Below are positions 14,092 to 59,563 of a DNA stretch of 64,000 bases, one piece after another. A program made the translations under genes and the position numbers. The stretch's first letter is position 1; every line of letters starts with the position of its first letter. Source of the stretch: Rebecca billardiae RCC1528 (taxonomy: Eukaryota > Protista > Haptophyta); NCBI GenBank assembly GCA_965240325.2, contig OZ251247.1, forward strand, positions 62,001 through 126,000, written 5' to 3'. Below the pieces are notes generated by a model. It saw only the letters and a program-made list of their open reading frames with translations. It had not been told where the DNA came from and did not search any database.

Positions 14092-15582
14092 TCACCTGTG
14101 CTCGCGCGAGGCAGCCACGCGCGGCAGCGGCTCGACGCGCCCGAGCCCCCACGCAGGCGCGCCGTACACCAGACTGTGGCCGGCCATGCTCAGGCCGCGG
14201 CCGAGTGCTGCCGACTGCTCGCCGCACGAGTGCACGCTGCCATCAGCAGTGAGGTACAGCGCGTGCTGAGGGCCAAAGGCGACGCTCTGCACGCGGGCAC
14301 TGGCAAGGGCTGGAACGGGCACGGGCACGCACACACCCGACCGTGCGGCATCGGGTGGCTGGCCGAGCTGCCCAAAGTAGTTGTCGCCGAACGTGTGCAC
14401 GCCGCCGTCCGCGTCCACCACCGCGCTGCTCCTGTAGCCAGCGCACGCTCGCACAGCGTTGACGCCAGCCAGGGCCTCGATGCGCTTGGGCAGCAGCTGC
14501 AACGTCCGGTCACCGTGGCCGAGGCAGCCGACACGCCCCTCCCCAAACGCGTGCACGCCGCCGCCCGCGTCCGCCACCAGGCTGTGCGCAGCGCCCGCGC
14601 TCACGTGCACGGCGCGCACGCCCGCGAGCGCCTCGATGCGCCTCGGCGTGTGCTGATCCTGCCAGTCGCCGTGGCCGAGACGGCCGTCCGAGCCAGTGCC
14701 GCACGAGTAGACGGCGCCTTGCGCAGAAAGGATCAGCGTGTGGAAAGTACCCGCAGCCACCCCGCCCACGCGCACGCTGTCCAGCGCCTCGATGCGCGTC
14801 GGCTCCCACCGGTCCTCCGTGTCGCCGTGGCCGAGCTGGCCGTCGTCGTTGTAGCCCCAGCTGTAGGCGCACCCAGCTGCGGTGAGCGCGAGGCTGTGGC
14901 AGCGGCCAGCCGAGATGGCGATGATGGGCTCGGTCGCGGGTAGCTTGACGAGAGCGAATACTGAAACCTGCTCCGCCGTGCCTCCCAGCCCGAGCTGGCC
15001 GTACCTGTTGTTGCCGCAGCCGTACACGGCGCCGGCCTCGCTCAGCGCGAGCAGGTGCCAGGCGCCAGTGGCCACCGCGACCACGCGCACCGCACAGAGC
15101 GAGGCGGCGTGCGTCGGTACGCGCACGGACGACATGCTCGGGTGGCCAACCGCCGCGTGCGCTCGCCACTCGCCCGTCGGCTGCCTGGTGACCCCGCCCC
15201 GCACCTCCTCCTCGCCGCACGTGTGCAGCCCGCCCTCCGCGTCCACAAACGCGCTGACGCCCCCGCCTGCCGCGACGGGGGATGCATGCGCGTTCGCAAG
15301 TTCGAGCACGCGCTCGCGCACGAGCAGCTCCTCCGTCCACGTGCGCACGCCCGAGGGCAGCGCCGGTGGCAGCGCGCGCGCGTGCCCGCGCGCGCGCGCG
15401 CGCTCGCGCAGCGCGCGCTCGACCGGCGAGCGGCCGCCGGGCGCGCCGCGGAAGATGCGCGAGGCGGCGTTAGCCACGGCGAGGTCACGAGGCGGCAGGC
15501 GCGCCACGATGCGCTCGATCAGCTCCGGCGGCAGCTCGCGCAGCCCGGGCGACGTCGCCCCCGCCGCGTCGTCGGTGGCCAT
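14092..15582 (-). CDS. F-box-like + RCC1/BLIP-II repeat beta-propeller protein, copy 1, intronless
   Basis: N-terminal LRELPPELIERIVARLPPRDLA, then repeated G-x-N-x-x-GQLGHGD...P-x-RIEAL...SAG-x-x-HSL blades in one ORF. Confidence 0.92.
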   Translation of the reverse strand: MATDDAAGATSPGLRELPPELIERIVARLPPRDLAVANAASRIFRGAPGGRSPVERALRERARARGHARALPPALPSGVRTWTEELLVRERVLELANAHASPVAAGGGVSAFVDAEGGLHTCGEEEVRGGVTRQPTGEWRAHAAVGHPSMSSVRVPTHAASLCAVRVVAVATGAWHLLALSEAGAVYGCGNNRYGQLGLGGTAEQVSVFALVKLPATEPIIAISAGRCHSLALTAAGCAYSWGYNDDGQLGHGDTEDRWEPTRIEALDSVRVGGVAAGTFHTLILSAQGAVYSCGTGSDGRLGHGDWQDQHTPRRIEALAGVRAVHVSAGAAHSLVADAGGGVHAFGEGRVGCLGHGDRTLQLLPKRIEALAGVNAVRACAGYRSSAVVDADGGVHTFGDNYFGQLGQPPDAARSGVCVPVPVPALASARVQSVAFGPQHALYLTADGSVHSCGEQSAALGRGLSMAGHSLVYGAPAWGLGRVEPLPRVAASREHR

Positions 15583-15641
15583 CGTAGTCGTCCACTGACG
15601 ATGCTCATCACGACCCGCCAGTCTGATCACCCGGAGCCCGC

Positions 15642-17128
15642 CACTGGGCGCAGGAATTTCGGGTGGGGATTTTCTTTTCCGAATATGTTGGTGATGCCGT
15701 CAGAGCACCACCAACCTCTGCCGCTGGCGGCTGCGCTGACAGCGCGCTGGGCGGCGCTGGAGGGGCGAGATGGGCGCCGACTGCGCGCCCTCCTGCGGTA
15801 GTTGCGTGCCCGCGAAGGCGGTGCGCGTGGTTGAGCGCGGCTGAAGAGCAGCCATTTGCGTCGTTCCACCGCTCGCCGTTCGGAATCACTGCATCCGCCG
15901 CGCCTCAGGCCATCGCGTGCGCCGCACCAACAAGGAAGTTGTGTGCATTCCTCGGCTGACTGCACGCGTGCCGCGAGCAGCGGCGTCGGCGTCCGGCACT
16001 TGGTTGCACTGGGCAATGTCCAGGTAGTTTATGCACGCGGCATCGCTCGTCACAGTACGCTGCCTGGCATACGCATCTGCACGGGTCACACAGCCGTCAA
16101 AAGGCATGATCGAGCATCACGCAGCGGTTGGCATCGACCTACGGCGAGGGTCGTGTGAGCATGCAAAGCACTGACATGCGCCCTTCTGGATAGTGATGTA
16201 GTGAGTACATTCCCGCGTGAAAGGAGCGCGCGCCATTCAGGCACCGGAAGCGGCGTCGGGGCTGGATGCTCACGTCTTAGGCAGGCTGATGCTGCCTTCC
16301 GGCTGCACGGGTGCGTCTATCAAGGCTGACCGTGTGTGCACGATGCGCACCGTCAAGTTCGACACGAACGTCCAGACGTGAGCTACTGCTTGACAAGGTA
16401 GTATACACACATTCATACACGCGCCATGTCATCCGAGGAGGCACATACACGCAGGCCATCATGGGCCTCGTTCAGGTATATTCTGCATCAGCACGCATGC
16501 ATGCACGTACTAGCTCGGGCCAAGATTGACGTCGGAGCACGAGTCAGGGAGTTCAATGCCGGGGCAGAGCTGGACAGCGGTCACGTGTGTGGCCACTCCG
16601 CGCGAGCGCACATGCTCCGCGTCACCGCATATCAGCATGGCGTGCGCTGCAACGTCATCGTCGGGCCAGAGCGCTTGTTCGACCAATCGGCTCGCATGAA
16701 TGATGCAATCAGCACACCTGAACGCAGCTGTTCGGACCCGCGCTCATGCGCGGCGGCGCAAGGTAGCGCAGTGCGTACAGCGTAGGCCTCGCCGCGCGGA
16801 AGCGCATGCTCTGTGTGTGTCTCGCCTCGCATGGCGCACGCGGGCGAGGCTGGCCGTGTGGCGGTGTGCACAGACAAGTGCTGGCCCGAGGCAAGTACAG
16901 CCGAATGCGATGCGCGGCGCGAAGCGGCGAATGGCACTTCAGCACGACTGCCCAGCCTAGCTCGCCGGCTCTGCGCTCGCGGGATCGTCCACACGCACGG
17001 GAGCGCGGCGCCGTCGCCCGCTCGCCCGAGACGCGCGCGTCCGCCGCGCAGCGCGCGGCTGAATAAATGCAAGGCGGAAATAAAAAGCGCGCCGATTTTC
17101 TCCGACCCTGGGTGCCGTGTCCCCAGTG
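15642..17128 (+). mobile_element. Non-autonomous element of about 1.49 kb with CACTGGG...CCCAGTG ends, copy 1
   Basis: Near-identical inverted copy at 55891-57384; short terminal inverted repeats; no convincing ORF; 59 bp upstream of the ATG of F-box-RCC1 copy 1. Confidence 0.85.
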
Positions 17129-17273
17129 GTGTATAAAAGGGGATTTTTAAAAGTATTGGTGGTAAATCCGGATCGATTGTACAGTCAAACCGTCGTAGTC
17201 GCGCAGCGCCACTCTGAACTCGTCACTGCTCGCCGCTCGGCACACTCCTCATTCAGTACTATACGTAATTACC

Positions 17274-17327
17274 CGGGCGTCAATCTCGCCTGCCTTAGCT
17301 GTGTGCGTCTCTTGTTCTAAGTAAACT
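17274..17327. repeat. Motif of about 50 bp shared with 49280-49335 and 63881-63926
   Basis: gggcgtcaatctcgcctgccttagctgtgtgcgtctcttgttctaagtaaact; two of the three copies lie 5' of minus-strand F-box-RCC1 genes. Confidence 0.8.
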
Positions 17328-17835: not shown

Positions 17836-19305
17836 TCACTCCTTGAGCAGCGCGTCGATGTCGCCCTCGAGCACGTCTGCGAACGCCTTGAGGAAGGCGG
17901 CGCTGTCTGCGCCGTAGATGTGCCGGTGGTCGGCGGTCACGGTGACCGTCATCTTCTTGAGCACGCCGATGTTGCCGTTGGGCAGCGCGGAGACGACGGG
18001 GAGCGAGGCGCCGATCGCCATGATCGCGCCCGTGCCGGGCGGCAGGATCGCGCCGAAGCTGGACACGCCCATCATGCCCAGGTTGGACAGCGTGAACGTG
18101 CCGCTGGAGTACTCGTCCGGGCTGAGCGCCTTTGAGCGCGCGCGCGTCACCAGGTCCGCCCACGCGCGCGAGAGGCTGTACAGGTCGGTCTGGTCGGCGG
18201 CCTGCAGCGTGGGCGTGATCAGCCCGCCGTCCGGCATCGCCACGGCGACGGCGACGTTGATCGACGCCGGCTGCTCGATCCCGTCGGGCAGCACGTACTT
18301 TGCGTTCAGGACGGGCACCTGACGCAGCGCCAGCGCCGCCGCCTTTGCGAGCAGCGCGGTCGTGGTGACGCCCTTGGGCTTGAGCTGCGCGTACAGCGCG
18401 TCCAGCTTGTCCGTGCAGATGGAGCGCGAGGTCTGGAAGGTGGGCACGGACAGCGACCACTGCGCGCACGCACACACACAGGGGGGGGGGGGGGAGGGGA
18501 GCTGAGCTGAGCTGGGGCGCGTGGCCGCAAGGCCAGCCGCACACACACGCACACGCACCGGCGCGCGCACGCACGCACGCACGCACACACGCAAGCACGC
18601 ACGCACAGCAGCGCGCACGCGCACCTCCATGTTCTTGACGACGGCCTTCTGCAGCCCAGACATGGGCGTCACGCCCGCGGACACGGCGGGGGGCGCGGCC
18701 GCGCCGCCCTCCTTCTTCGAGCCGCCGCCCTTTGCCGCGCCGCCGCCGCCCGCCGGCGCGGGCGGCGGCGGCAGCTTGGCCGCCTTCTCCTCCGCGGCGG
18801 TGGGCTGCCCCAGCGCCTTGCGCACGTCATCGGCGGTGATGCGGCCGCCCAGCCCACTGCCCGCCACGCTGCCGAGGTCGACGCCGCCCGACTGCGCGAG
18901 CTTCTTGGCGAGGGGCGAGGCCAGGCCCTTCAGGTCGGACACGTACCCCAACGGCTGCGGCAGAGGCGCGCAAAGGCAGCGGCAGCGCGGCAGCGCGGCA
19001 GCGCGCGGCGGGGGCGGGGGCGCGCGCGCGCGGCTGAGCCGCTGCGCGCGCGCGCGGCCAGCGGCGCTCCACCGCGCGCCCGGCGCTGTGCGCGCGGGTG
19101 TGCGCGCTGTGCGCACCTTGGGCGCGGCCGCGGCCGCGGGCTTGGCGCCGCCGCCCGCCGCGGCGGCCTTGACGTCGTCCGCCGTGATCGCCCCGCCCGG
19201 CCCCGAGCCGCCCACGCTGCCAATGTCCACGCCGAGCTCCTCCGCCAGCTTGCGCGCAAACGGAGAGGCCGAGACGCGGCCCCCGGCCGAGGGGGCGGCC
19301 GCGGG

Positions 19306-19336
<31 letters not shown>

Positions 19337-21043
19337 GGGGCGGCGGGCGCGGCGGCGGGCGTGGCCGCGAGCGCGGCGCACTGGTTGCCGCTGCCCACCG
19401 CCTTTGCGTACGCCTGCACCGCCGGGATGTCCGCCTCAGACTTGGCGAGGAAGGCGACGGCGGCGCCCACCGGCGCGCTCTCGCCCTCGGGCGTCACGAT
19501 CGCTGCGGCGGTTACACGCCGTTACAAGCCGTTACGCACGCACACACGCGCACGCACGCACACACGCGGGGTGCACACGCGCGCGGGCGCACGCAGGCGC
19601 GCGCGGGTCGCGGTGGGGTCGAGGCCGGGTGAGCCGGCGCACCGCGCGTGCACGCCCTCTCTCTCTCACGCGCGCGCAGCCGCCCAGCCGCCCATCCGCC
19701 CCGCCACCCGCCACCCGCCCCGCGCCAACACGGCGGCAGCGCGCGAGCGCGCCCCGGCTGGGCGCCGCCGCGCCGCGCGCCGTGTGTGCGGCCGTGCCGC
19801 TGCCGCTGCCGCGCGCGGTGCGGCCTTGCCGCCGTGCGCCGCTGGGGCGCCGTGTGTCCGCGTGTGCGTGTGTGCGCGCGTGCGCGCGTGCGTGCCGCGG
19901 CGCACCCGCGACGAATCCATCCTCGAAGGACTCGACGTCCATGTCCGCCTTGTCCGACTCGACGACCAGCAGCGTCTCGCCCGACTCCACCTTCTCACCG
20001 ACGCCCTTCGCCCACTGCGTGATCCGCCCCTCCGTCATCGTGCTCGAGAGCGCGGGCATGCACACGTCCACCACGCCCGCGGGCGGCTCGGGCGCGGACG
20101 CGGCGGCGGCGGCGGGCGGCGCGGAGGGCGCGGCGGCGGGCGGGGCGGCGGCGGCGGCGGCGCCGCCGCCGCTCGCGACGGCCGCCTGGACCTTGGGGAT
20201 GTCGTCAGCGCTGCGCACGCGCGCCGCGCGCCGCGCGCCGCGCGTCAGCCGCGACGCCGCGCGGTACGCCGCGCTGCCGCGTCGCGCGCCGTGCCGCGCC
20301 GCGGTGTGCGGTGCGCGTGCGTGCGCGTGCGTGCGTGCGCGCGCGTGCGTGCGCGTGCGTGCGTGCGCGTGCGTGCGCGTGCGCTCACGAGGCAGCGAGG
20401 TAGCCGACAGGCGCGCCCACCGGCGCGCTCTCGCCCTCGGGCGTGACGATCGCTGCACGCCGCGCGCGCACGCGCACGCACACCCACACGGCAGGGCGGG
20501 CGCGAGCACCGCGCGTGAGCGCGTGCAGCCGGGCGCGCGGCCGGCCGGCGCGCCGCGGCCGGCGCAGCGCCGAGGGTTAGGCGCGGCGCGGCGCGGCGCA
20601 GCGCACCTGCGAGGTAGCCGTCCTCGAAGGACTCGACGTCCATGTCCGCCTTGTCCGACTCGACGACGAGCAGCGTCTCGCCCGACTCCACCTTGTCGCC
20701 CACGGCCTTCACCTGCCGCGCGCCGCGCGCCGCGCGCCGCCGCCGCCGGCTGTGAGCGCGCGCGCGCCGCCACGCGGCCGAGCGCGCGCGCGCGCGCGCG
20801 CACCCACTGCGTGATGCGGCCCTCGGTCATGGTGGACGAGAGCGCGGGCATCGCAATCTCCGTCCCGCCGTCGACCATCGACACGCGCGCCACGCCCGCG
20901 CGGCGCGTCGCCGCCCAGGGCGCGGCGGCGGCGCGGCGGGTGGCAAACGCGCTCGGCCCGAGCCGCAGCGCCGCGCACGGCTCGGGCGTCAGCATGGCGG
21001 CGGCGGCGAGCGCGCCGAGCGCGAGAGAGCTCGGGGTGTGCAT
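17836..21043 (-). CDS. DLAT: Dihydrolipoamide acetyltransferase (pyruvate dehydrogenase E2), plastid type, spliced
   Basis: Signal-like N-terminus MHTPSSLALGALAAAAML; two lipoyl domains (MPALSSTMTEG...VVESDKADMDVESF); two subunit-binding motifs (ASPFARKLAEELGVD, ASPLAKKLAQSGGVD); catalytic TFTLSNLGM and TADHRHIYGAD; GT-AG introns. Confidence 0.95.
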
Positions 21044-21237
21044 GGCGGTGCGCTGCGTGCGGCTGCTGCCGCGCCGCGCCTCACGCGCTCGCGTGCCCGT
21101 CGCGCGGCGAGAGTGTGGGTGCCGCACCGCGCCGCGAGATTGCGCCGCGCTGCTCGGTAATGACGTCGGAGGGGGCGCCGCCTGCGCAGTCCGGGCGGGC
21201 GCGTGGGCGGCCGAGAGTCCGGGGCGGCGTTCGCACG

Positions 21238-24578: not shown

Positions 24579-24674
24579 TACGGTAATCCATATTGCGCTT
24601 TCGCCGGTAGTCGCCCACCGTCGCCCACAGTGCCAAGGCGCGCGAACTCGCCCACCGCTCGGGCCGTGGACGCG

Positions 24675-26138
24675 ATGGCGACGCCGCCGCCGCTGCCGCC
24701 ATGCGACGCAGTGACGGGCGTGCGCCTGGGGGACCTGCAACCCGAGCTGCTTGGGCGCGTCGCCGCCTTCCTCGCGGTGCCCGACCTCGCCAGCCTGAAC
24801 GCCACGGCGCGCCTCTTCCACGCCGCGCCGCCCGGCGGGTGCTCGCCGGTCGAGCGCGCGCTGCGCGAGCGCGCGCGCGCGCGCGGGCACGAGCGCGCGC
24901 TGCCGGCGACGCTGCCCGCGGGCGTGTGCAGCTGGGCGGATGAGCTGCTTGCGCGCGAGTGCGTGCTCGAGCTCGCGCACGCGCATTCGCCTCCGGTCGC
25001 GGCTGGCCACGGCTTCAGCGCGTTTGTGGACGCGGAGGGCGGGCTGCACACGTGCGGCGAGGAGGAGGTGCTGAACGCGCGCGGCTGGGCGTATCGAGCG
25101 TGCGCGGCCGCTGGCCACCCAGGGCTGCACGTGGCGTGCACGCCGACGCGCGTCGCCTCGCTCAGCGGTGTGCGCGTGGTCGCGGTGGCCGCTGGGGACC
25201 ACCTGCTCGCGCTGAGCGACGCCGGCGCCGTGTACGGCTGCGGCAAGAACCGCTTCGGCCAGCTGGGGCTGGGGGACACGGAGGAGCGGTGTACATTCGC
25301 GCCGGTCGACGCATTGCGGGGTGACGCCGTCATTGGCATCGCGGCGGGTATTCGGCACAGCCTCGCGCTCACCGCCGCTGGGTGCGCGTACAGCTGGGGT
25401 GACAACCGCAGCGGCCAGCTCGGCCACGGCGACAAGAAGGAGCGGCGGGCGCCGACGCGCATCGAGGCGCTGGACGGCGTGCGCGTGGGCGGCTTAGCCG
25501 GGGGTGAATGCCACACGCTACTGCTCTCGGCGCACGGAGCCGTCTACTCGTGCGGCCACGGCCGCCACGGCCAGCTCGGCCACGGCGACCAGGAGGATCA
25601 GCTCACGCCCACACGCGCCGAGGCGCTCGCGGGCGTGCGCGCCGTGCACGTGAGCGCGGGCATCAGGCACAGCCTGGTGGTGGGCAGCGACGGGGGGCTG
25701 CGTGCGAGCGGCCTGCGCCTGGCCGACCAGCGCATTTATGCATTCGTGCGCATCGAGGCATTGGCGGGTGTGCGCGCCGTTCGCGCGTGCGCCGGCTCTG
25801 GCAGCAGCGCGGTGGTGGGCGCGGACGGCAGCGTGCACACGTTCGGGGACAACAGCAACGGCGTGCTCGGGCACGAGGTGGGGACGGGCGAGCACGTGGA
25901 GACAGTGGACGCCCCCACGCGCGTGCTGGCCCTCGCCAGCGCCCGTGTGCGCAGCGTCGCATGCACCCTTCAGCACTCGCTGTTTGTGAGTGCGGACGGC
26001 AGCGTGCACTCGTGCGGCTTGCAGTCGGCAGCGCTCGGCCGCGGCATGAGCATGGCTGCCGCGGAGCACCCAGTGCCTGCCCACGGGATCGGACGCGTCG
26101 AGCCGCTGCCGCGCGTGGCCGGCGTGCCAGGGGCGTGA
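24675..26138 (+). CDS. F-box-like + RCC1 repeat protein, copy 2, intronless
   Basis: LGDLQPELLGRVAAFLAVPDLA followed by RCC1 blades; one blade is shortened (GLRASGLRLADQRIYAF). Confidence 0.92.
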   Translation: MATPPPLPPCDAVTGVRLGDLQPELLGRVAAFLAVPDLASLNATARLFHAAPPGGCSPVERALRERARARGHERALPATLPAGVCSWADELLARECVLELAHAHSPPVAAGHGFSAFVDAEGGLHTCGEEEVLNARGWAYRACAAAGHPGLHVACTPTRVASLSGVRVVAVAAGDHLLALSDAGAVYGCGKNRFGQLGLGDTEERCTFAPVDALRGDAVIGIAAGIRHSLALTAAGCAYSWGDNRSGQLGHGDKKERRAPTRIEALDGVRVGGLAGGECHTLLLSAHGAVYSCGHGRHGQLGHGDQEDQLTPTRAEALAGVRAVHVSAGIRHSLVVGSDGGLRASGLRLADQRIYAFVRIEALAGVRAVRACAGSGSSAVVGADGSVHTFGDNSNGVLGHEVGTGEHVETVDAPTRVLALASARVRSVACTLQHSLFVSADGSVHSCGLQSAALGRGMSMAAAEHPVPAHGIGRVEPLPRVAGVPGA

Positions 26139-26526: not shown

Positions 26527-28029
26527 ATGGTGACGACGCGCGCACGCGGCGCGACGGGCGTGCGGCTGGCGGATCTGCAACCCGAGTTGCTGGGGCGTAT
26601 CGCGACCTTCCTCGCGCTGCCCGACCTCGCCGCCGCCAACGCCACGGCGCGCCTCTTCCACGCCGCGCCGCCGGGCGGCCGCTCGGCCGTCGAGCACGCG
26701 CTGCGCGAGCGGGCGCGCACGCGCGGGCACACGCACGCACTGCCGATGACGCTGCCCGTGGGCGTGGTTAGCTGGATGATGGAGCTGTTTGCGCGCGAGT
26801 GCGTGCTCGCGCTCGCGCGCGCGCATGCCTCCCCGGTCTCGGCAGGCGATGGCTTCAGCGCGCTTGTGGACGCGGAGGGCGGGCTGCACACGTGCGGCGA
26901 GGAGGCGGTGGAGGCCGAGGACGGGTGGCCGAGGGTTGAGTATCGAGCGCGCGTGGCTTCTGGCCACCCGAAGATGCCGGCGGTGCGCGTGCCGACGCAC
27001 GTCGCCTCGCTCAGTGGTGTGCGCGTGGTCGCGGTGGCCGCTGGATTAGGGTTACGGGAGGCCCACCTGCTCGCGCTGAGCGACGCCGGCGCCGTGTACG
27101 GCTGCGGCTGCAACGAGTGCGGCCAGCTCGGGCTGGGGGACACGGAGGAGCGGCGGGACTTCGCGCGGATCGATCGCCTACGTGCTGCTTGTGTCGTGGG
27201 CATCTCGGCCGGTGACCAGCACAGCCTCGCGCTCACCGCCGCTGGGTGCGCGTACAGCTGGGGCTGGAACGTCTGCGGCCAGCTCGGCCACGGCGACAAG
27301 AAGGATCGTTGGGAGCCGACGCGCATCGAGGCTCTGGACGGCGTGCGCGTGGGTGGCGTTGCTGCGGGCTGTTTCCACACGCTGTTCGTGTCTGCGCCTG
27401 GCGCCATCTACTCGTGCGGCGCTGGCAACTTTGGCCGTCTCGGCCACGGTGACGAGCGGGATCAGCACACGCCGCAGCGCATCGAGGCGCTCGCGGGCGT
27501 GCGCGCCGTGCACGTGAGCGCGGGCGGGGAGCACAGCCTGGTGGTGGACAGCGACGGGGCGGTGCACTCGTTCGGATTCCATTGGCAAGACCAGCTCGGC
27601 CACGGAGACGAGCACGAGCAGCTCACGCCGAGGCGGATCGACTCCCTCGCGGGTGTGCGCATCGTGCGCGCGTGTGCAGGCACAGAGAGCAGCGCGGCGC
27701 TGGGTGCTGACGGCAGCGCGCACGTGTTCGGGAGCGGTGGGTGGGACCAGCTCGGGCTGGTGGCGGCTGAGAGCCAGATGGTGCTCAGCAGTCCCACGCG
27801 CGTGCTAGGTCTCGACGGCGCCAACGTGTCGGCCTGCGCGCTCGGCCCCCGCCACTTGCTCTTCGCCACACAGGCGGGTGCCGTGTACGCGTGCGGAGAG
27901 AAGTCAGCCGCGCTCGGCCTCGGGCTGAGCACAGGGGACGATGATGACTATGACGATGACGGGCCGCAGCTCGAGCGCGTCGCGCGGCTGCCATACGTGC
28001 GGGTGCGCGCAGCACCCCACGCGGGCTAG
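26527..28029 (+). CDS. F-box-like + RCC1 repeat protein, copy 3, intronless, tandem to copy 2
   Basis: LADLQPELLGRIATFLALPDLA followed by RCC1 blades and an acidic tail DDDDYDDD. Confidence 0.92.
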   Translation: MVTTRARGATGVRLADLQPELLGRIATFLALPDLAAANATARLFHAAPPGGRSAVEHALRERARTRGHTHALPMTLPVGVVSWMMELFARECVLALARAHASPVSAGDGFSALVDAEGGLHTCGEEAVEAEDGWPRVEYRARVASGHPKMPAVRVPTHVASLSGVRVVAVAAGLGLREAHLLALSDAGAVYGCGCNECGQLGLGDTEERRDFARIDRLRAACVVGISAGDQHSLALTAAGCAYSWGWNVCGQLGHGDKKDRWEPTRIEALDGVRVGGVAAGCFHTLFVSAPGAIYSCGAGNFGRLGHGDERDQHTPQRIEALAGVRAVHVSAGGEHSLVVDSDGAVHSFGFHWQDQLGHGDEHEQLTPRRIDSLAGVRIVRACAGTESSAALGADGSAHVFGSGGWDQLGLVAAESQMVLSSPTRVLGLDGANVSACALGPRHLLFATQAGAVYACGEKSAALGLGLSTGDDDDYDDDGPQLERVARLPYVRVRAAPHAG

Positions 28030-32500: not shown

Positions 32501-34438
32501 ATGGGCGCACGCGCCATGGCCGCCCCCGCGCTCGGCGGCGGCGGCGCCGCCGCCGCCGCCCGCCGCCGCCAGCACGGCATGGCGGCGCGCCGCCGCGTCC
32601 GCCTCGGCCGCGAGCAGCCGCGCGCGCGCCGACGCGTGCGCGCGCTCGGTCGCGTCCTGCGCGCGCACACGCAGCGCGCACACGCACGCGGCGGGTGTGG
32701 CGGTGCGCGCGGCCGCAGGGGCGGGCGTGCGACTGCTGCTGAGCCGACGACGCGCGCGCGCGCTCGCGCGCGGCAGCCCCAGCCCCAGCCCCGCAGCCAC
32801 AGACACAGAGCCACGTGTCACAGGCACAGGCACACACAGGGAGAGCGACGGACGGACACACACACGCGCGAGCGAGCGAACGCCCGCGCCGCCCGCGCCC
32901 CGCGCCCGCCCGCACGCACCTGCGCCGCCGCGTCCGCAGCCACGCGCCACTCCCGCCGCTGCGCCGCGCAGACGAGCTTCATCGCCAGCAGGTCGGAGTG
33001 GCGCTGCTGCGCGGACACGTCGAGCACGTCGTCGGCGGCGTCGGGCGCGGACGGGTGCGCGGCGCAGCCGTGCGCGCCGTCGTGCGCGCCGCCGCGCTCG
33101 CACCCGCCGTGCGCGCGCGCCGCGTCCGCGCCGTGCGCGGCGAGCGCGCACGCGGCGTGCGCGCCGCCGCCCGCGCCGCCGAGCGCGCCGCCGCCGAGCG
33201 CGCCGCCCGCCGCGCCGCCGCCGCCGCCGCCGCCCGCGGCGCGCGCCTCGGCCGCGCGCGCGGCGAGCGCCTCGACCGCGGCGGCCGCGCCCGCGCGCGC
33301 CGCGTACACACGGCCCACCGCCTCGGCGCGCTGCGCCAGCCCCGCCGCCGCCGCCGCCGCCGTCAGGTGCCCCAGCTCGACCGGCGCGCCGTCGGCGCCG
33401 CCGCCGCCGCCGCCGCCCTCGGCCACCTCGTCGAGCGCGGCCGTCTCGGCGGCGCGCGCCGTGCGCGTGGCGATGGAGGCGGAGAGCCTTGCGATCTGCG
33501 CGTCGATCTGCTGCATGAACTCGGGCGCGATCGGGTGCGGCGCGTTGATGAGCCCGCCCAGCAGCCCCAGCTGCGACTCGAAGGCGGAGCTCGAGTTGCG
33601 GATGGCCGCCTCGAGCGCCAGGACCTTGTCGGTGAGCGAGTGCACGCGCAGCCGCAGCATCGAGACCGAGCACGCCGACTGCGGCGGGGCGGGGCCGGGG
33701 CCGGGCGGCAGCGGCTGCTGCGGCTGCGGCTGCGGCTGCGGCTGCGGCTGCGGCTGCGGCTGCGGCTGCGGCTGCGGCGGCGGGTCGGTCGAGCCGCCCG
33801 AGCCGCGCGCGGACGCGTCGGCGCCGCCGTCGCCAGAGCCGGCGGCGCCGCCGCCGCGCTCGGCCGAGCCCGCGCCGCCCGGCGCGGACGGCGGCGCGGC
33901 GGCCGAGCCGCCGCGCTCGGCGCTGCCGCTGCCGCCGCGCGCGCCGCCGCTGCCGCCGCGCCCGCGCCCGCTGCCGCTGCCGCTGCCGCCCTGCGGCTGC
34001 CCGCCGCTCGCCGCGCCGCTGCCGCCCGCGCCGCCCGCCGTGGCGCCGCTGCCGCCCGCGCCCGCTGCAGCGCCCGCCGCGTGGTGGTGCTGCGAGGAGG
34101 AGCGCTTGATCTCGCCCAGCTGCTCGCGGCAGCCGCGCGCAAACAGCGCGTGCGAAAACTCGACCGACGTGGGCGTGGACGCGTGCACCACTTTGTAAAA
34201 GCCGTAGAAGTGCAGCTGCCGCACGAACGAGCGGAAGTTGGAGTGCTTGAAGTACGCCGGGAGCACCTCCGCCGAGAAGGCCGCCGTGTCGCGCACCGCA
34301 AAGCCCTGCCCGCAGCTCCGCCAGCAGACCAGCGAGTCCGTCTGTGGCGAGCTCACAATCTCGTACAGCTTGAGCAGAAAGGGCGGCGTGCGCGCCAGCG
34401 CCATCTGCAGAGACGCGCTCGCGGCGGCAGAGGCGGCC

Positions 34439-34477
<39 letters not shown>

Positions 34478-35299
34478 GGCGCGGGGTCGGCGGCCGCAGC
34501 GCCGGCACCGGCGGCAGCGTCGGCCGCGGGCGGCTGCGCCGCCGCCGCCGAGGCGGGCCAGCCGCCGCCGCCGCCGCCGCCGCCGCCGCGGCTCGCCTCG
34601 GCGGCGCGCGCGCGCTGCGCCGCGGCCGCCGCCGTCTCCGCCGCCGCCATCGCCGCGGCCGCGTGCGCGAGCTGCTGCGCGTGCAGCGTGCTCGCAGCGG
34701 CGGCGGTGGAGGCCGGGGCGGCCGCAGACACGCCGCCGCCCAGCGCGCCCGCCGCCGCGTGCGCCGTGAGCTGCGCAAGGCTGAGGGGGCCGGGCGGCGG
34801 GTGCGGCTGCGGCTGCGGCTGCCCGCCGGCGGCGACGGCTGCGGCCGCCGCGGCGAGCGACGCGCACGCCTGCTGCTGCTGCTGCTGCGCCGGCTGCAGC
34901 GCGCACGGCGCCATCTGGCCGCCCGCCCCCCCGCACTGCGCCGGCAGCGCCTGCGCCGACGACAGCCCCTGCGGCGGCGCGCCCGCGCAGAGGTGGTGCG
35001 CGAGCTGCGCGGCGCACGCGCCCACGCCGCCCAGCTGCGCCGGCGGCGCGCCCGCGCCGAGCAGCGGCAGCGCGGGCGGCTGCGCGTGGTGGTGCGAGCA
35101 CGTCGCGCACCGCACCGGGTGGCCCGCCGCCGCGGCTGAGAGCGCTCCCGCCATCAGCGGCGCCGCGCAGCCCGCGCAGAGCGCGCAGCCGCCCGCGTGC
35201 GCGGACGGCCCCGGCGGCGGCGGCGGCGGCGGCAGCGCCGGCGCGGCGTGGAAGGGCTGCTGGTGCGGGTGGGGCGGCGGCGGCAGCAGCTGGTGCTGG

Positions 35300-35362
<63 letters not shown>

Positions 35363-39075: not shown

Positions 39076-39937
39076 TCAGCGGCTCAGGCCGGGCGCCTGC
39101 CGCATCAGCGACGACGTCGACGCGGACGACACGGCTGGCGGCGGCGGCGCTGCTGGCGCCTCGCCGCCGCCGCCGTCGCCGCCGCCGCCGAGGTAGCGCT
39201 TGCACACGTACCGCTGCGGGTGTCCCTCGCACGGCAGCTGCACCCACTGCGCGCTCGCACCCTCGAGGGCGGCGCAGTCGGCGCGCGCGCGCGGCTGCGC
39301 GGGCGGCGCGCCCGCCGGCTGCGCGGCGCCGTCGGCCGGGTGGGCGCGCCGCCAGTTGGCGTACGCGCTGCCCTTGAGCCGGCCGTCCGCCCACGCCCAC
39401 CCGCCTCCGCCTGCCCCCGCCCCCCGCCCCTCCTGCGCCGGCTGCCGGAACAGCCCCAGCAGCAGCAGCCCCCCGCTGGGCCCCAGCAGGCAGCCGTGCA
39501 GCCGACCCTCCGCGCCGTCGCCCACAGAGCTCAGCACCGCAGAGCTCGGCAGCGCGGCGGTGGCGGCGGTGGCGGCGGCGGTGGCGTTGCGCCGCGGGTG
39601 CAGCGCGGCGCACGCGGCCGCGGCGGCGCGCGGCGCGAGCGGCGGCCCCCGCTCCGCCGTGCCATCCCCGCGCAGGCCGTACGCCGCGCGCCCGCCCGGC
39701 CCCGTGTAGACGTGCCAGCCGTGCGCGTCCAGGGGGAGGGAGCGGAGGAGGCGCGCGCACTGGCGGCACTCGCGCAGCCCCGCGGCGCTGAGCGCGAGGC
39801 AGACGCCCAGCGCCACGCACAGCCAGCACGCGTACGCGCAGCCCCAGACCAGCAGCCGCCGCGGCCGCGGCCGCAGCCGGCCGAGCAGCGCGCGCGCGCG
39901 CCGCGCGCCGCGCCGCCGCCCGCTGCCGCTGGGCGCC

Positions 39938-39981
<44 letters not shown>

Positions 39982-42394
39982 CTCCGGAGCGACGCGCGCG
40001 GCACGGCCGGCGACGGCGTGCGGCGGCATGCCCGACGGCGCCACCGCCTCGCTCGCGCGCGGGCCCCGCCGCGCGCGGCCGCCGTCCGGCCCGTCCGCCG
40101 CTGCCGCCGGCGCTGACGCTGCCACCACCGCCGCCGCCGCCGCCGCCGGGCGCGTCACTGCAGACACAGCCGCCTCTGCGGTGCAGCCGCCGAGCGCATC
40201 CGCGCCGGCGGCGGCGGCGGTGGTGGTGGCATCGTCGGCGCGATGGATGCCGCAGCCCGCGCCCACCGCGCCCGCCGCGCCCGCCGCGCCGGCGGCAGCG
40301 GCGGCTGCGCTCGGCGCGGCGCCCGCGGCGCTGTCGGCGGCGGCGCCGTCGGCGTCGCCGCCGCCCGCGCGCGGCGCGCCCTCCGCCAGCGATCGCAGCG
40401 TGCGCCTCAGCGCGGCGTTGAACGCGCCCCGCTCGGCGTGGCCGCTCGTCACCTCGACGCACGCCAGCAGCCACTGCCGGTCCGCCTCCGAGTAGCACCG
40501 CGCGCCTTCCACGTCGAACCCCTCCACACTCGCCAGCTCAAAGTCCGGGAGCAGCACGGCCTCTGTGGGGCGGCCGCCTCCGCCCACGTACGCGTGGGCG
40601 ACGAGCTCGACGACGCACCAGAGGCGCTGCGCGAGGGTGGGGCCGAGCAGCAGCAGCAGACGCTCGCAGCCCGCGAGGTACACGGGCAGCCGCGCCACGT
40701 CGCAGCCCGCCTCGTCGTCGCACCCCGCCACGTCGCAGCCCGCCTCGTCGTCGGCCGCGCGCTCGGCCGCCGGCTGCGCGCCGGCTGCCGCGCGCCCCTG
40801 CCGCCCCTGCCGCCCCTGCCGCGCCTGCGCGCGCGGGCCGGGCAGCAGGCAGCACCTGCACAGCACCGCCACAGCCACAGCCGGGGGGGCGAGGGGCGAG
40901 GGGGGGGGTGAGCGGGGCCAGCCTCCCGCGCGGGTGCGGGCGGTGCAGCGTGTGTGCGGCAGCAGCAGCGCAGCAGCAGCGCAGCAGCCCCCGTCGATCC
41001 AGAGCACAGGGCTAGGGGTAGGGGTAGGGGTACGGGTAGGGGTAGGGGTAGGGCGTGCAGCGGCAGCGCAGCACCTGTCGATCCAGAGCAGAGGCTCCCG
41101 CCCGTGCTGCGCCACGAACCGAGCGCGCCACGCGCTCAGCGCGGCCCACTTGTGCGACGGCTCGTCCAGGCTCGAGTGCGTCACAAAGGCTGCGCGCACG
41201 CACGCACGCACACACGCACACACGCACGCACGCATACACGCACGCACACACGCACACGCACGCACGCACGCCAGCGGGGCGGGAGGGCAGCAGGGCAGCA
41301 GGGCGGGTGTGTCGGGGGTGTCGGCTGGGCGGCGGGCGGCGGGGCCAGCCGTGCCCGAGCGCGCGCGCACCGTCGATCTCGCCCAGCTCGGCGTGCCGCG
41401 TGCACGCGTACAGCGCCGCCTCCGCCGCGCGCCCCGCCGCGTGCGGCAGCGCCCCTAGGGGCTCGAAGGCGGAGGGCGGCAGGCGGTCGAAGCGGACCGC
41501 GCGCAGGCTGCGCTGCGCGGCGCGCACGAGGGCGTCGACGTCGCGCGCGCCGAGGAGGGTGCCCACGCCGGCGGCGGAGGCGACGTCGGCGCCGCGCGAG
41601 ACGAGGCAGCCGAGCACGCGCGCGCGCACGCGCGGCAGCAGGCAGCCGAGCGCGAGCGCGAGCGCACCGGCCGCGCGCACAAACCACACGCTGGCGAGCT
41701 GTGCGGCGGAGGGGAAGGCGGGCGCCTGCAGGCGGAGGAGGAGCAGGTTGTGCAGCGTGTTGAGCACGACCACGAGGTACACGCAGCCCACGCCGTCCCA
41801 CAGCAGCTCGAGCACGCCGCGCATCGACACGCGCCGCTCCGCCGGCGCGCGGCGCGGCGCAACGCCGAGCGCCGCCGCCAGCGCGCGCAGCCACACGGCG
41901 GAGAGGGCGGTGAGGGCGCAGAGCGGGGCGAGCTGCAGCGCGAGGAAGACGGCGGCGAGGGCGCCGGGGCACGTGTCCAGCCGCGCCCCGCCCAGCCGCG
42001 CCGCCCACGGCCGCGCCAGCAGGTTCGCCACCGCGAGCGCCGGCCCCGCCAGCGCGAGCGCGAGGGTGACGGCACTCACCGTGGCCGTGTCGGCGGGGCG
42101 CAGCGCGAGGAGGAGGGCGGGGAGGGCGAGCATGCCGCACGTGGTGGCGGCGGAGAGGTCGGAGCCGAACGCCTCGCTCCGCCGCCCGAAGAGCGCGCCC
42201 AGCGTGTACGCCAGCCCCGCGCACAGCAGCGCTCCGCCCACGAGCAGCGGAGGCGCCGTCGTGCGCAGCCGCTCGCGCCGCCCCGCCGCCTGGGCGTCGA
42301 GCAGGCGCTGGCGCAGGAGCGCGAGCTGGACGGCGCGCGGGAGCTCGTACGCCTTGTCCGCCTCGCCGTCCGCCGGTCGCGGCGTGGAGGACAT
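39076..42394 (-). CDS. Multi-pass membrane protein: about 6 TM, TIR-like domain, TM, C-type lectin domain; exons 42394-41371, 41189-41075, 40855-39076
   Basis: Splicing gives D|AFVTHS...LLWIDR|CCL...LPVYLAGCERLLLLLGPTLAQRLWCVVEL, then a helix LLVWGCAYACWLCVALGVCLAL, then lectin motifs AAAAC, LLLLGL, WAWADG, YANW, DCAAL, WVQLPC, YVCK. Confidence 0.8.
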
Positions 42395-43857
42395 CGAGCT
42401 CGCGCGCGCGTGCGCGCTACGCGAGGCGACTCGCACTCGTCGGGCTCGAGCGGCTGAGGGCCGTGCGAGCGGTGGGCGACCCCCCTCCAATCTGTAAATC
42501 TGTACATCCGGTCCGGGCGCCGTCTTTCTTTCTTGCCGAAGTCTTCCAGCAACCCGATGCGGTATTCATCACTTATTAGGACTTTTAGCGAATCCGTTCA
42601 CTATGATACTCGCTTGCTCAGCTCATCATTCGTCAATCGTCACGCCTCGGTAGTAATTAATCATCACGCTCCGGCCGCCAGCCGGCCAGCCGGGGAAGAC
42701 ACGTCGCGGCGGAGGGCCGACCGCCTGGACCGGTGCGGCGCGAAGTGCACACCGACCCGTCCGCGGCGTGCGCTGCCCACGGCGCCCGGGACAGCCCGGC
42801 CCACACTGCGAGAGGCGCGCCAGCGCAGCCCCTGGCTGGAGACGCGCCCGGATGGGCGCTGGCCACGTGCCCCGAGCCCGCCGTGCGCAAGGCAGCTGCC
42901 GCCGCCACCGGCCGCCCAGCAGGCAGGCAGCACGCGCGCACGCGGCCCGATGCGCGCGCATCACGGCGCCTGGCAGCTGCCCACGCGGCCCGCAGCGCAC
43001 GCGCTCGCTCCGTGCGGTCAGCCGCGGTGCGCGCCCGCCCCGCGGGCCGCAGCGCCTCGACGCGCCTCGGTGCCGCTCCGTCCGCGCGCCCTCGGAGCGG
43101 CAGCTGCCCTCGCGTGGCCGAGCGCACGCGCAGCGCTGCAGTGGCCAGCAGCCTGCGCGCGCGCGTGCGCGTGTGTGGCGCCGGCTGAAGCAGCCGGAAG
43201 GAGGCGGAGGGCGGCGGCGGGCGTGAGCGCGCGCGCAGTGCTGGCACGCCTGAGCCACCGGCAGCCGCGCGCGCCCGAGAGTCCCCCGCCGGACGCCCGT
43301 CCTCCTCCGCCACCGCCTCCGCGCCGCACGCGCCTGCAGGGCACACGCTGCCGGCGCGCCGCAACCGGGTGCGCGGCACGCGCTGAGGGAAGCGAGCCCG
43401 CACGAGGCGGCGCGGGCGGACGCACGCGAAGGCGGTTGCACGCGCACGCGCACGAGCAGCTCGTCCAGTACGGTGTGCATGCCAGCGGGCTGCGCCGTCG
43501 GCTGCGCGCGCGCGTGCCCCCCGCGCGCGCGCGCGCTCGCGTCGCGCGTCGCTCGACCGCCGAGCGGCCGCTGGGCGGCGCGCGGCGGAGGGGGTGCACG
43601 GTGGCGATGGCAGCGGCGAGGAACGCGCAGCCGCGGGGGTGACGCGAGGATGCGCTCGATCCCCTCGGGCGGGAAGCTCCAACGCCGTCGCGGCCGTCCC
43701 AGCGGCGGGGCGCCATGGGAAGTCGGCCATGGTTGTCCGGTGCCGCAAGCATCCCGGAAAGTCCGGCTGATCCCCCGGACTCGCCCCCATCGAGGGCACG
43801 TCGCAGCTCCCGCGTCTGTGGCTGCTCCGAGTGGCGCGCCCCCCCGCTGGCGGCACC

Positions 43858-45998: not shown

Positions 45999-47468
45999 TC
46001 AGCAGACAAGCGCACGCCACGCCGTCTCGACGCGCGCGGGCGTGTCAATCCGCTGGGTGGGCTCGTCTCGCTCGGCCTCGCTCATGCCGAGGCCGAGCGC
46101 AGCCGACCGCTTGCCGCACGCGTGCACGCTGCCGTCCGCACTCACAAACAGCGAGTGGGAGTCGCCCATGGCACAGCGCACCACACGGAGAAGAGCGAGG
46201 GCAGCCACGCGCGACGGGACGGCATGCCTCATCTCTTCGGACCCCAGCCCGAGCTGGCCGTACCAGTTGACCCCAAACGTGTGCACGCTGCCGTCCGCGC
46301 CCAGCACCGCGCTGCTGTCAAAGCCAGCGCACGCGCGCACGGCGCGCACAGCGGCGAGCGCCTCAATGCGCCTCGGCGTGGGCTGCTCAGGCGTGTCTGC
46401 GTGCCCGAGCGAGCCATCCTCATCATACCCGAACGAGTACACCGCCCCCTCGCTGTCCACCACCAGGCTGTGGACTTGGCCCGCGCTCACGTGCACGGCG
46501 CGCACGCCCGCGAGCGCCTCGATGCGCTGCGGCGTGAGCTGACGCCGATGGTCGCCGTGGCCGAGCTGGCCAAGCTGACCATGGCCGCACGAGTAGACGG
46601 CGCCGTGCGCAGATAGAAGCAGCGTGTGCGCCTCACCAGCTGCCATCCCGCCCACGCGCACACCGTCCAGCGCCTCGATGCGCGTCGGCTCCCACCGGTC
46701 CTTCGTGTCGCCGTGGCCGAGCTGGCCGCAGCCGTTGCGGCCCCAGCTGTACGCGCACCCAGCGGCGGTGAGCGTGAGGCTGTGACGCCTTCCAGCGGCG
46801 ATCGCCAGAACCACGACACCGACCAGCGCCGCGACGGGCTCGAACTCGCGACAGTCCTCCGTGTCCCCCAGCCCCAGCTGGCCCCAGCCGTTCTCGCCGC
46901 AGCCGTACACAGCGCCGGCGTCGCTCAGCGCGAGCAGGTGGTCATGGCCTGCGGCCACAGCGACCACGCGCACCGCGCTGAGGGAGGCGACGCGCGTCGG
47001 CACACGTAGTCCCCGCGCGCCCGCGTGGCCGCTAGCGACGGACGCTCGATACTCCCCCGTCGGTTGCCTGGTGTGCTCGTCCCACTCCTCCTCCTCGCCG
47101 CACGTGTGCAGCCCGCCCTCCGCGTCCACAAACGCGCTGAAGCCCTCGCCGACCGCCGCCGAAGATGCGTGCTCGCGTGCGAGCTCGATCACGCGCTCGC
47201 GCACGAAAAGCTCCTCCGTCCACGTACACGAAGCCGCGGGCTGCGTCTCGGGCAACGCGCGCTCGTGCCCGCGCGCGCGCGCGCGCTCGCGCAGCGCGCG
47301 CTCGACCGGCGAGCAGCCGCCGGGCGGCGCGGCGTGGAAGAGGCGCGCGGTGGCGTTCAGGCTGGCGAGGTCGCGCGGCGGCAGGAGCGAGATGATGCGG
47401 TCGAGCACCTCGGACGGCAGGTCGACGAGCGCGAGACGACGCGCGTGCGAGTGTGCTGCGTTGGCCAT
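45999..47468 (-). CDS. F-box-like + RCC1 repeat protein, copy 4, intronless
   Basis: LVDLPSEVLDRIISLLPPRDLASL followed by RCC1 blades. Confidence 0.92.
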   Translation of the reverse strand: MANAAHSHARRLALVDLPSEVLDRIISLLPPRDLASLNATARLFHAAPPGGCSPVERALRERARARGHERALPETQPAASCTWTEELFVRERVIELAREHASSAAVGEGFSAFVDAEGGLHTCGEEEEWDEHTRQPTGEYRASVASGHAGARGLRVPTRVASLSAVRVVAVAAGHDHLLALSDAGAVYGCGENGWGQLGLGDTEDCREFEPVAALVGVVVLAIAAGRRHSLTLTAAGCAYSWGRNGCGQLGHGDTKDRWEPTRIEALDGVRVGGMAAGEAHTLLLSAHGAVYSCGHGQLGQLGHGDHRRQLTPQRIEALAGVRAVHVSAGQVHSLVVDSEGAVYSFGYDEDGSLGHADTPEQPTPRRIEALAAVRAVRACAGFDSSAVLGADGSVHTFGVNWYGQLGLGSEEMRHAVPSRVAALALLRVVRCAMGDSHSLFVSADGSVHACGKRSAALGLGMSEAERDEPTQRIDTPARVETAWRALVC

Positions 47469-47804
47469 CGCTCTCCGCCAGCCAGTACGGTGAGAGCGCG
47501 TGAGCGTCGGCGCCGGCGCGCCGCGGCCGCGCTCCGCAGTCTCCCGAGTCGCACAGCCTGACAGCCACCGCCGTTGTACAACGGTGATGACAGTTGGCGT
47601 CTGCCTGTTCTGCAAGTTCTGCTAGCTTAGTCTTATTGCTACTGTTAATTCGCCGCGATCTGATGCTCGCGACTAGTAATAAGTAGTACAGCTGCGCATC
47701 AGCCTCTGCCCGCCGCTGGCCGACCGCGCACTCACGGCTCCGTCATCGCAACACTCGTCACTGATGCAACGCGGAGCAGTTGGACGCCGGCAGAGGGTGC
47801 TGCG

Positions 47805-49265
47805 TCAGCATACGCGAGCACGCCACGCCGCCTCGACGCGCGCGGGCGTGTCAATCCGCTGGGTGGGCTCGTCTCGCTCGGCCGCGCTCATGCCGAGGCC
47901 GAGCGCAGCCGATCGCTCACCGCACGCGTACACGCTGCCGTCCGCACTCACAAACAGCGAGTGGGAGTCGCCCATGGCACAGCGCACCACGCGTGCGGGG
48001 GCGAGGGCGCTGACTTGCGTCGGAGCCAGATGCTCGCGCTGCCGGCACCCCAGCCCGAGCTGGCCAAACTTGTTGTTCCCGAACGTGTGCACGCTGCCGT
48101 CCGCGCCCAGCACCGCGCTGCTGTCAAAGCCAGCACACGCGCGCACTGCGCGCACACCAGCGAGCGCCTCGACGCGGCATGGCGTGGACCACCTGCCACG
48201 GTCGTCGTGGCCGAGCTGGCCGTCTAAGCCACGTCCAAACGAGTGCAAGCCGCCCTCCGCGTCCACCACCAGGCTGTGCAGCGTGCCCGCACTCACGTGC
48301 ACGGCGCGCACGCCGTCCAGCGCCTCGATGCGCCTCGGCGTGTGCTGATCCTGCTCGTCGCCGTGGCCGAGACGGCCGTCCGAGCCAGTGCCGCACGAGT
48401 AGACGGCGCCTTGCACAGATAGAAACAGCGAGTGCATCAAGCCCCCGGATGCGCCGCCCGTGCGCACGCCGTCCAGCGCCTCGATGCGCGTCGGCTCCCA
48501 CCGGTCCTCCGTGTCGCCGTGGCCGAGCTGGCCGCTGACATTGTAGCCCCAGCTGTACGCACCGCCCGCGGCGGTGAGCGCCAGGCTGTGGTAGTTGCCG
48601 GCCGAGATGCCGACGGCGGGCTCACTCACGGGTAGCTCGACAAAAACGAATGCGCGCCGCTCCTCCGTGTTGCCCAGCCCCAGCTGGCCGGAGCCGTTGT
48701 AGCCGCAGCCGTACACGGCGCCGGCATCGCTCAGCGCGAGCAGGTGGCAGTTGCCAGCGGCCACCGCGACCACGCGCACCGCACTGAGGGAGACGACGTG
48801 CGTCGGCACACGCACTACATGCACGTCCGTGTGGCCGATGGCCTCGTGCACTCGGAACTCGCCCGTCGGCTCCCTGGTGTCCTCGTCCTCCTCCTCCTCC
48901 TCGCCGCACGTGTGCAGCCCGCCCTCCGCGTCCACAAACGCGCTGAAGCAGTCGCGTGCGGCGACGACTGCGGCGTGCACGCATGCGAGCTCGAGAAGGT
49001 ACTCGCGCACGAACAGCTCCTCCGTCCACGTGCGCACGCCCGAAGGCAGCGACGCCGGCAGCGCGCGCTCGTGCCCGCGCGCGCGCGCGCACTTGCGCAG
49101 CGCGCGCTCGACCGGTGAGCAACCGCCGGGCGGCGCGGCGTGGAAGAGGCGCGCGGTGGCGTTCAGGCTGGCGAGGTCACGAGGCGGCAGGAGCGAGATG
49201 ATGCAGTCAAGCACCTCTGACGGCAGGTCGACGAGCGCGCGCGTCGGTTGTGCGGTGTCGCCCAT
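47805..49265 (-). CDS. F-box-like + RCC1 repeat protein, copy 5, intronless, tandem to copy 4
   Basis: LVDLPSEVLDCIISLLPPRDLASL followed by RCC1 blades; upstream 49361-49500 is similar to 47563-47685 upstream of copy 4. Confidence 0.92.
   Translation of the reverse strand: MGDTAQPTRALVDLPSEVLDCIISLLPPRDLASLNATARLFHAAPPGGCSPVERALRKCARARGHERALPASLPSGVRTWTEELFVREYLLELACVHAAVVAARDCFSAFVDAEGGLHTCGEEEEEDEDTREPTGEFRVHEAIGHTDVHVVRVPTHVVSLSAVRVVAVAAGNCHLLALSDAGAVYGCGYNGSGQLGLGNTEERRAFVFVELPVSEPAVGISAGNYHSLALTAAGGAYSWGYNVSGQLGHGDTEDRWEPTRIEALDGVRTGGASGGLMHSLFLSVQGAVYSCGTGSDGRLGHGDEQDQHTPRRIEALDGVRAVHVSAGTLHSLVVDAEGGLHSFGRGLDGQLGHDDRGRWSTPCRVEALAGVRAVRACAGFDSSAVLGADGSVHTFGNNKFGQLGLGCRQREHLAPTQVSALAPARVVRCAMGDSHSLFVSADGSVYACGERSAALGLGMSAAERDEPTQRIDTPARVEAAWRARVC

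Positions 49266-55466: not shown

Positions 55467-55686
<220 letters not shown>

Positions 55687-59339: not shown

Positions 59340-59563
<224 letters not shown>

Follow-up and report, generated by a model that had tools for sequence, protein, structure and literature searches.

F-box/RCC1 genes of the haptophyte Rebecca billardiae combine a near-constant propeller scaffold with periodic hypervariable positions: a candidate repertoire of ubiquitin ligase receptors

Results and Discussion

Five F-box/RCC1 genes in a GC-rich stretch of the genome

We analyzed a 64-kb stretch of the genome of Rebecca billardiae RCC1528 (contig OZ251247.1 of assembly GCA_965240325.2, positions 62,001 to 126,000 of the forward strand), which is called the window here and whose first letter is position 1. 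Its G+C content is about 72% overall and ranges from 55 to 88%; 73.25% G+C has been published for Diacronema lutheri, of the Pavlovales (PMC8379373). A reading of the sequence alone had suggested that five F-box/RCC1 paralogues lie between positions 14092 and 49265, and indeed, five open reading frames (ORFs) of this type were found at that span (g1 to g5; Table 1). All of them are intact and intronless and encode proteins of 486 to 500 amino acids that are 60 to 74% identical, and their G+C content at third codon positions (GC3) is 0.86 to 0.89. A further full copy was not found in the window by tblastn.

Each protein consists of an F-box-like N terminus that a helical linker joins to an RCC1 propeller of seven blades. 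The RCC1 repeat family PF00415 was matched by all five copies with E values of 1e-54 to 1e-70, in four to six stretches each, and PF25390 was also matched by all five, with 209 to 263 bits against a cutoff of 150. The AlphaFold2 model of g4, for which 38 members of the family were used, had a predicted local distance difference test score (pLDDT) of 93.4 and a predicted template modeling score (pTM) of 0.92. It consists of five helices followed by seven blades of four strands each, as assigned with DSSP, in agreement with the RCC1 propeller that the sequence-only reading had named. The best match of the g4 propeller among solved folds was UVR8 (template modeling [TM] score normalized to the target, 0.94), followed by the propellers of HERC1/2, RPGR and RCC1, all with a Foldseek probability of 1.00. 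UVR8 was also the best match of the propeller at the sequence level (phmmer; E = 7e-69, 30% identity).

Hypervariable positions recur in every blade

After the motif YGCG, g1 to g5 read NNRY, KNRF, CNEC, ENGW and YNGS, respectively, and after YSWG they read YNDD, DNRS, WNVC, RNGC and YNVS. The two residues in the first AG-xx-HSL are RC, IR, DQ, RR and NY, and those in a later SAG-xx-H are AA, IR, GE, QV and TL. All of these strings had been listed beforehand, and every one of them was exact when the translations were reread. The near-identical flanking codons described along with them were found as well: GTG TAC GGC TGC GGC nnn AAC nnn nnn GGC CAG CT is the same in all five copies, whereas the nnn codons differ at two to three bases. 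We also considered whether the loop flanks are constrained at the nucleotide level, but synonymous diversity there was only mildly reduced (0.16 versus 0.23 and 0.22 versus 0.26), and the idea was dropped.

For a quantitative comparison, 35 columns were fixed from the RCC1 motif alone, i.e., two residues per GxxH and three per GxNxxG in seven blades. Of these 35 columns, 23 had at least four different residues across g1 to g5, as did only 31 of the 331 other propeller columns (Fisher's exact test, P = 1.7e-13). When variability was phased by blade, it peaked at exactly the GxxH and GxNxxG offsets, with a weaker peak just after GHGD. The statement that the scaffold is almost invariant while the loops vary was thus confirmed, with the qualification that the N-terminal tail, an insertion in blade 1, part of blade 2 and the C terminus also vary.

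The variable positions are predicted to lie on one face of the propeller

In the g4 model, each GxxH pair lies in the turn between strands 1 and 2 of its blade, and each GxNxxG triplet opens the loop that joins strands 3 and 4. The loops between strands 2 and 3 and those leading from strand 4 to strand 1 of the next blade, which are on the opposite face, are conserved. Because alternate loops of a continuous antiparallel meander share a side, both sets of variable loops should be on the same face. The pair in AG-xx-H aligns with W233 and R234 in the GWRHT motif of UVR8, and GxNxxG positions align with W94 and D96 in UVR8 WGWGDFG (phmmer). These four residues of UVR8 are dimer-interface residues (PMC5091643). 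The equivalence to the GWRHT loop and the clustering on one face, both part of the sequence-only reading, therefore agree with the alignment and with the strand order of the model, respectively; that the variable residues lie on one propeller face is, however, a topological argument from the model and the UVR8 alignment and not a coordinate measurement.

Replacement changes at the loops exceed synonymous changes in the scaffold

Scaffold synonymous divergence (dS) between the window copies was 0.31 to 0.41, and loop nonsynonymous divergence (dN) was 0.72 to 1.37, which is 2.0 to 4.5 times the scaffold dS in all 10 pairs. Fourfold-degenerate third positions differed in 0.21 of the pairs versus 0.58 expected at saturation, and thus, scaffold dS is not saturated. 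Codon models, for which we used our own implementation, gave an omega (dN/dS) of 2.46 for the 35 loop columns and of 0.30 for the rest, with a likelihood ratio test (LRT) statistic of 28.7 against an omega of 1. The core-blade omega was 15 to 18 whichever of the 15 possible topologies and of two codon-frequency models was used. Model M2a was preferred over M1a (LRT, 98.7), and 10 of the 20 sites that it selected are within the predefined columns. To this extent, the diversifying selection proposed earlier was supported in part: loop dN exceeded scaffold dS in every pair and omega exceeded 1 in the standard models.

Runs of agreement beyond permutation limits were detected in 5 of the 10 pairs of window copies, and these included nonadjacent copies. 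The resulting mosaic tracts indicate gene conversion or segment exchange among the copies.

A metagenomic sister set repeats the pattern

Relatives detected in metagenomes by database search have the same N-terminal module and propeller and are 37 to 52% identical to g4; the closest named Atlas clusters are mostly from haptophytes and are labeled F-box proteins. A scan of metagenome contigs of the Joint Genome Institute (JGI), seeded with a tight subgroup, gave at least 212 related stretches. Eighty loci, nearly all from two data sets, were kept and reduced to 41 distinct ORFs and then to 21 full-length paralogues, which are 61 to 79% identical and form a star-like tree with roughly equal divergence. 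Even from blade to blade, their scaffold hardly changes (AGxxHSLALTADGAVWSWGxGxxGxLGHGDxQxQLLPKKVEA). Each of the 32 predefined columns had 7 to 13 different residues, and the median elsewhere was 2. The loop omega was 10 (LRT, 693), and M2a selected 29 sites, 24 of them at predefined loop columns and none in the F-box. Since the columns had been chosen on the window data, the result obtained with the sister set is a genuine replication.

The residues at the loop positions are not those expected from neutral evolution. In both sets, aromatic residues made up 14 to 19% and acidic residues 18 to 24%, versus about 2% each under the neutral expectation, and G, A, P and R together made up 23 to 33% versus 68 to 77% expected. 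A composition this far from the neutral expectation speaks against loops that have simply drifted.

Two further leads were rejected. The near-identical pair L003/L004 of the metagenomic loci was considered as recent alleles but proved to be a single gene whose 5' end is mosaic or chimeric, and a single DNA run (X1) considered as further data yielded short contigs that are 85 to 95% alike; these are paralogous scaffold pieces and were uninformative.

The N terminus resembles the F-box

At the family level, the Pfam family PF12937 was matched by 22 of the 38 members and PF00646 by 7. An N-terminal profile of 86 positions was searched against all PDB sequences, and all 16 matches were F-box proteins. 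FBXO31 was the best (E = 5e-4), and the others included FBXW7, FBXO22, FBH1, cyclin F, FBXL2/5, Legionella AnkB, Skp2 and FBXO3/4. A separate model of the N terminus (pLDDT, 85) has helices at residues 10 to 19, 22 to 31 and 33 to 36, i.e., the three-helix F-box fold. Nearly all of its top 25 or so Foldseek matches were F-box chains from Skp1 complexes (Fbw7, FBXO31, Cdc4 and Fbs1), with E values that are weak singly (0.09 to 3). In the alignments of this model to Fbw7 and Cdc4, about 90 columns of their F-box and linker were matched, with a query TM score of 0.53 to 0.56. Furthermore, a profile of the N-terminal module found 218 clusters at an E value of ≤1e-10 among 1.84 billion representatives at 50% identity. 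Homology of the N terminus to the F-box is thus supported by family-level Pfam matches, the PDB profile search and the fold search, and the claim that the proteins carry an F-box stands in the form of an F-box-like module.

A putative family of SCF substrate receptors and its alternatives

We give a probability of about 0.62 to the reading that these genes belong to a large, lineage-specific and probably haptophyte family of substrate receptors of SCF (Skp1-cullin-F-box) ubiquitin ligases with a diversified ligand face, the scaffold of which is kept by conversion and purifying selection. Contact with the ligase would be made through SKP1, on which the F-box and its linker helices would dock, and the RCC1-like propeller would present one face as the target-binding surface. 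The variable part of this surface would comprise, per blade, the two residues of the strand 1-2 turn and the three at the start of the strand 3-4 loop, which differ in nearly every copy, together with some residues after GHGD, the rest being constant. Purifying selection and gene conversion would hold the scaffold while selection for diversity would act on the residues of the face, and each paralogue might recognize another ligand and mark it for ubiquitination. Candidate ligands are viral proteins, mating or self/non-self factors and many endogenous substrates. A target-recognition repertoire is likely, but an antiviral role is speculation. In a bolder version, tens to hundreds of SCF receptors with a paratope-like face would be encoded in the haptophyte germline and would act as intracellular innate immunity, sending proteins of the giant viruses of these algae to the proteasome, and conversion would shuffle blades and thereby generate new specificities; this version appears rather improbable to us. 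Two pattern scans detected no relatives in viral contigs, but the method has low sensitivity and the evidence is therefore weak.

Several observations weigh against the receptor reading; besides the topological nature of the one-face argument, they are given here with the alternatives that they favor. In the first of these, concerted evolution without positive selection, the scaffold is homogenized by conversion, while diverged loop codons escape it, drift nearly unconstrained and merely look fast. The mosaic runs between copies and the star-like tree of about equally diverged paralogues would be explained in this way. When the window copies were fitted with a free multiplier for the loop synonymous rate, the fit preferred 4-fold-faster loops with an omega of 0.51 that was not significantly different from 1 (LRT, 1.75), and across the range of such fits, loops were 2.4 to 4 times faster and omega was 0.5 to 1. 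The omega above 1 in the window therefore depends on the loops sharing the scaffold synonymous rate, and data from five copies do not suffice to distinguish positive selection from a greater age or a higher mutation rate of the loops. Synonymous divergence is indeed raised at loop codons: where two copies share a residue, their codons differ about twice as frequently in the loops as in the scaffold, which fits older or faster-mutating loops. In the sister set, GC3 was 0.63 at the hypervariable codons versus 0.84 gene-wide, as expected if GC-biased conversion skips the loops, and dS was 0.14 in the F-box and linker versus 0.29 in the propeller scaffold; this contrast in GC3 and dS hints at GC-biased conversion on the scaffold that passes over the loop codons. 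In addition, recombination breaks the single-tree assumption of the codon models, and when synonymous rates were allowed to vary by site in a FUBAR-like grid, no more than 13 sites of the large set were supported, although this grid is far less sensitive because the two rates are inseparable at fully variable codons.

Against concerted evolution alone stands the sister set, in which freeing the synonymous rate of the loops left their omega at 5.5 (LRT, 86); under this stricter model, diversifying selection was thus not upheld in the window copies but was upheld in the 21 members. The loop composition, with G, A, P and R far below expectation and aromatic and acidic residues enriched about ten times, is likewise at odds with it, and a conversion tract, at tens of bases, would as a rule include a loop of two to three codons. 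We consider this alternative unlikely.

A second alternative accepts the diversified propeller but not the SCF adaptor: the N-terminal helices would look like an F-box but not bind SKP1, and the family would consist of plain binding, scaffolding or regulatory modules. Searched singly against the Pfam F-box-like cutoff of 24.3 bits, three of the five window proteins scored 17.5 to 23.5, i.e., below it, and g2 and g3 had no Pfam F-box match and have LQ where the LP motif of the F-box is expected. The weak E values of the fold search also fit this view, as does a dN/dS of about 0.7 for the F-box and linker, which are thus not strongly constrained. However, three independent searches returned essentially F-box proteins only, the plan of F-box, helical linker and propeller matches that of Fbw7 and Cdc4 over the aligned columns, and the module is conserved over the 218 sequence clusters. 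We regard this alternative as decidedly improbable. Finally, mutagenesis of the diversity-generating or hypermutation type, targeted to the loop codons and producing variability without selection, would account for the raised loop synonymous divergence, for loop rate multipliers that exceed 1 in the window copies and the sister set alike and for the very sharp borders between invariant flanks and variable codons, but it is most improbable, given that the surroundings of the genes showed neither a template repeat nor a reverse transcriptase, that the substitutions are of all kinds and often affect all three codon positions, that the variation is germline and between paralogues, that the loop composition is selected rather than mutational and that we know of no eukaryotic precedent for codon-precise targeted mutagenesis.

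Relation to known families

Lineage-specific, adaptively evolving families of F-box receptors were reportedly described in nematodes and plants by Thomas in 2006, and the S-locus F-box genes are a plant example of such families. The F-box/RCC1 genes share with these families large expansions, tandem arrays, a variable protein-binding domain downstream of the F-box and a proposed role in the recognition of foreign or non-self proteins. A site-specific excess of replacements in the binding domain, as in these families, was seen in the sister set under both kinds of model and in the window copies under the standard models. They differ in that the binding domain is an RCC1 propeller and not FTH/FBA, kelch or leucine-rich repeats (LRR), in that the host is a GC-rich alga and in that the variability is periodic, at about five to eight fixed positions per blade. 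The family would thus be of the adaptively diversified F-box receptor type that is already known; a near-constant RCC1 scaffold with strictly periodic hypervariable face residues was not found in the literature searched.

Among propeller proteins, Arabidopsis UVR8 (PDB 4D9S and 4DNW) is the one whose GWRHT tryptophan and arginine and whose W94 and D96 coincide with the variable positions, but it has no F-box. Its tryptophan triad (W233, W285 and W337) is not conserved in the five copies, none of which has W-R at the aligned positions. Since the equivalents of the triad are the most variable positions, the F-box/RCC1 proteins are not UV-B receptors. Fbw7, Cdc4 and beta-TrCP have the same plan of F-box, helical linker and propeller and bind their substrate at one propeller face; their propeller is of the WD40 rather than the RCC1 type, and they are single conserved genes and not a diversified family. 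The animal protein FBXO24 also combines an F-box with RCC1 repeats, and an FBXO24 cluster was among the nearest named clusters in a feature search (score, 0.94); the likeness is one of architecture. FBXO24 exists in vertebrates as a single-copy gene, for which hypervariability has, to our knowledge, not been reported. In architecture, FBXO24 and Fbw7/Cdc4 are closest to the F-box/RCC1 family.

No paper describing an F-box/RCC1 family was found in the literature searched. The genome papers on Diacronema and Phaeocystis do not mention it, and the Fugacium paper reports F-box and RCC1 as separately expanded families only. The hosts are ecologically dominant marine algae whose defenses against giant viruses are largely unknown, and the family offers a concrete and testable candidate for a recognition repertoire. 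It may also be viewed as a natural "library" with a fixed scaffold and about 35 to 50 randomized positions, which shows the RCC1 positions that tolerate any residue and could be useful for the engineering of binding proteins.

Gene copies and other features of the window

The five genes, a relic and the hypervariable codons of the modeled copy are listed in Table 1. Within 35 kb, there are two tandem pairs (g2/g3 and g4/g5), one single copy and one relic, which is the picture of tandem-array expansion with birth and death of genes. The coding sequences (CDS) of g4 and g5 are 83% identical at the nucleotide level, and in a self-comparison of the window, similarity between copies ended at the borders of the CDS. 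The pieces of the N-terminal module in the relic fall in different frames on three-frame translation and are readable only across several frames, and the relic is evidence of gene death within the F-box/RCC1 family. Blade 5 of g2 may also be decaying: at about positions 25710 to 25770, there is an in-frame deletion of 21 nt and a degenerate strand 3-4 loop, with GxxxxGQLGHGD replaced by SGLRLADQRIYAFV, while the ORF is still open.

Table 1. F-box/RCC1 genes and related features of the window
Feature	Positions	Strand	Details
g1, F-box/RCC1 gene, 496 aa, intact	14092-15582	-	F-box-like 15442-15546; linker 15286-15441; propeller 14188-15285; Pfam RCC1 E = 2.6e-65; F-box-like 17.5 bits (cutoff, 24.3)
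g2, F-box/RCC1 gene, 487 aa, open frame	24675-26138	+	F-box-like 24723-24827, LQ in place of LP; no Pfam F-box match alone
g3, F-box/RCC1 gene, 500 aa, tandem with g2	26527-28029	+	F-box-like 26563-26667; propeller 26827-27930
Decayed relic of N-terminal F-box/linker module, sixth partial copy, between both gene clusters	43438-43679	-	About 240 nt; about 78% nucleotide identity to 5' parts of g1 to g5 (self-blastn)
g4, F-box/RCC1 gene, 489 aa, modeled copy	45999-47468	-	F-box-like 47328-47432 (23.5 bits); linker 47169-47327; propeller 46080-47168
Hypervariable face codons in g4	46101-47147	-	E108 G109, H175 D176, E192 G194 W195, R227 R228, R244 G246 C247, E279 A280, H296 Q298 L299, Q331 V332, Y348 E350 D351, F383 D384, V400 W402 Y403, D436 S437, K453
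g5, F-box/RCC1 gene, 486 aa, tandem with g4	47805-49265	-	F-box-like 49134-49238; propeller 47886-48974

An inverted repeat of 1.5 kb (positions 15640 to 17130 and 55889 to 57386; 98.8% identity) has no convincing ORF and may be a nonautonomous mobile element; one of its copies begins 58 nt upstream of the start codon of g1. The minus strand at 17836 to 19497 carries a dihydrolipoamide acyltransferase-like gene, which encodes repeats of the lipoyl-binding/E3-binding type and, at the C terminus, a catalytic domain. Its stop-free reading crosses apparent introns, in which it differs from the intronless F-box/RCC1 genes.

Pfam searches with ten long neighboring ORFs gave a single match, a HisKA phospho-acceptor domain (E = 7.5e-8) in an ORF on the plus strand at 513 to 3317, which is a possible histidine kinase. 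Most long ORFs in the window are GC-driven artifacts. Three stretches (12448 to 12960, 30200 to 34700 and 39850 to 40400) reach up to 88% G+C, are internally repetitive and cross-match at 73 to 80%; Pfam found nothing in them, and their long ORFs in all frames are probably artifacts. Long (TA)n-type microsatellites are present at 55467 to 55683 and 59342 to 59562 in the right part of the window, which is lower in G+C, and one frame there reads IYIYIY.

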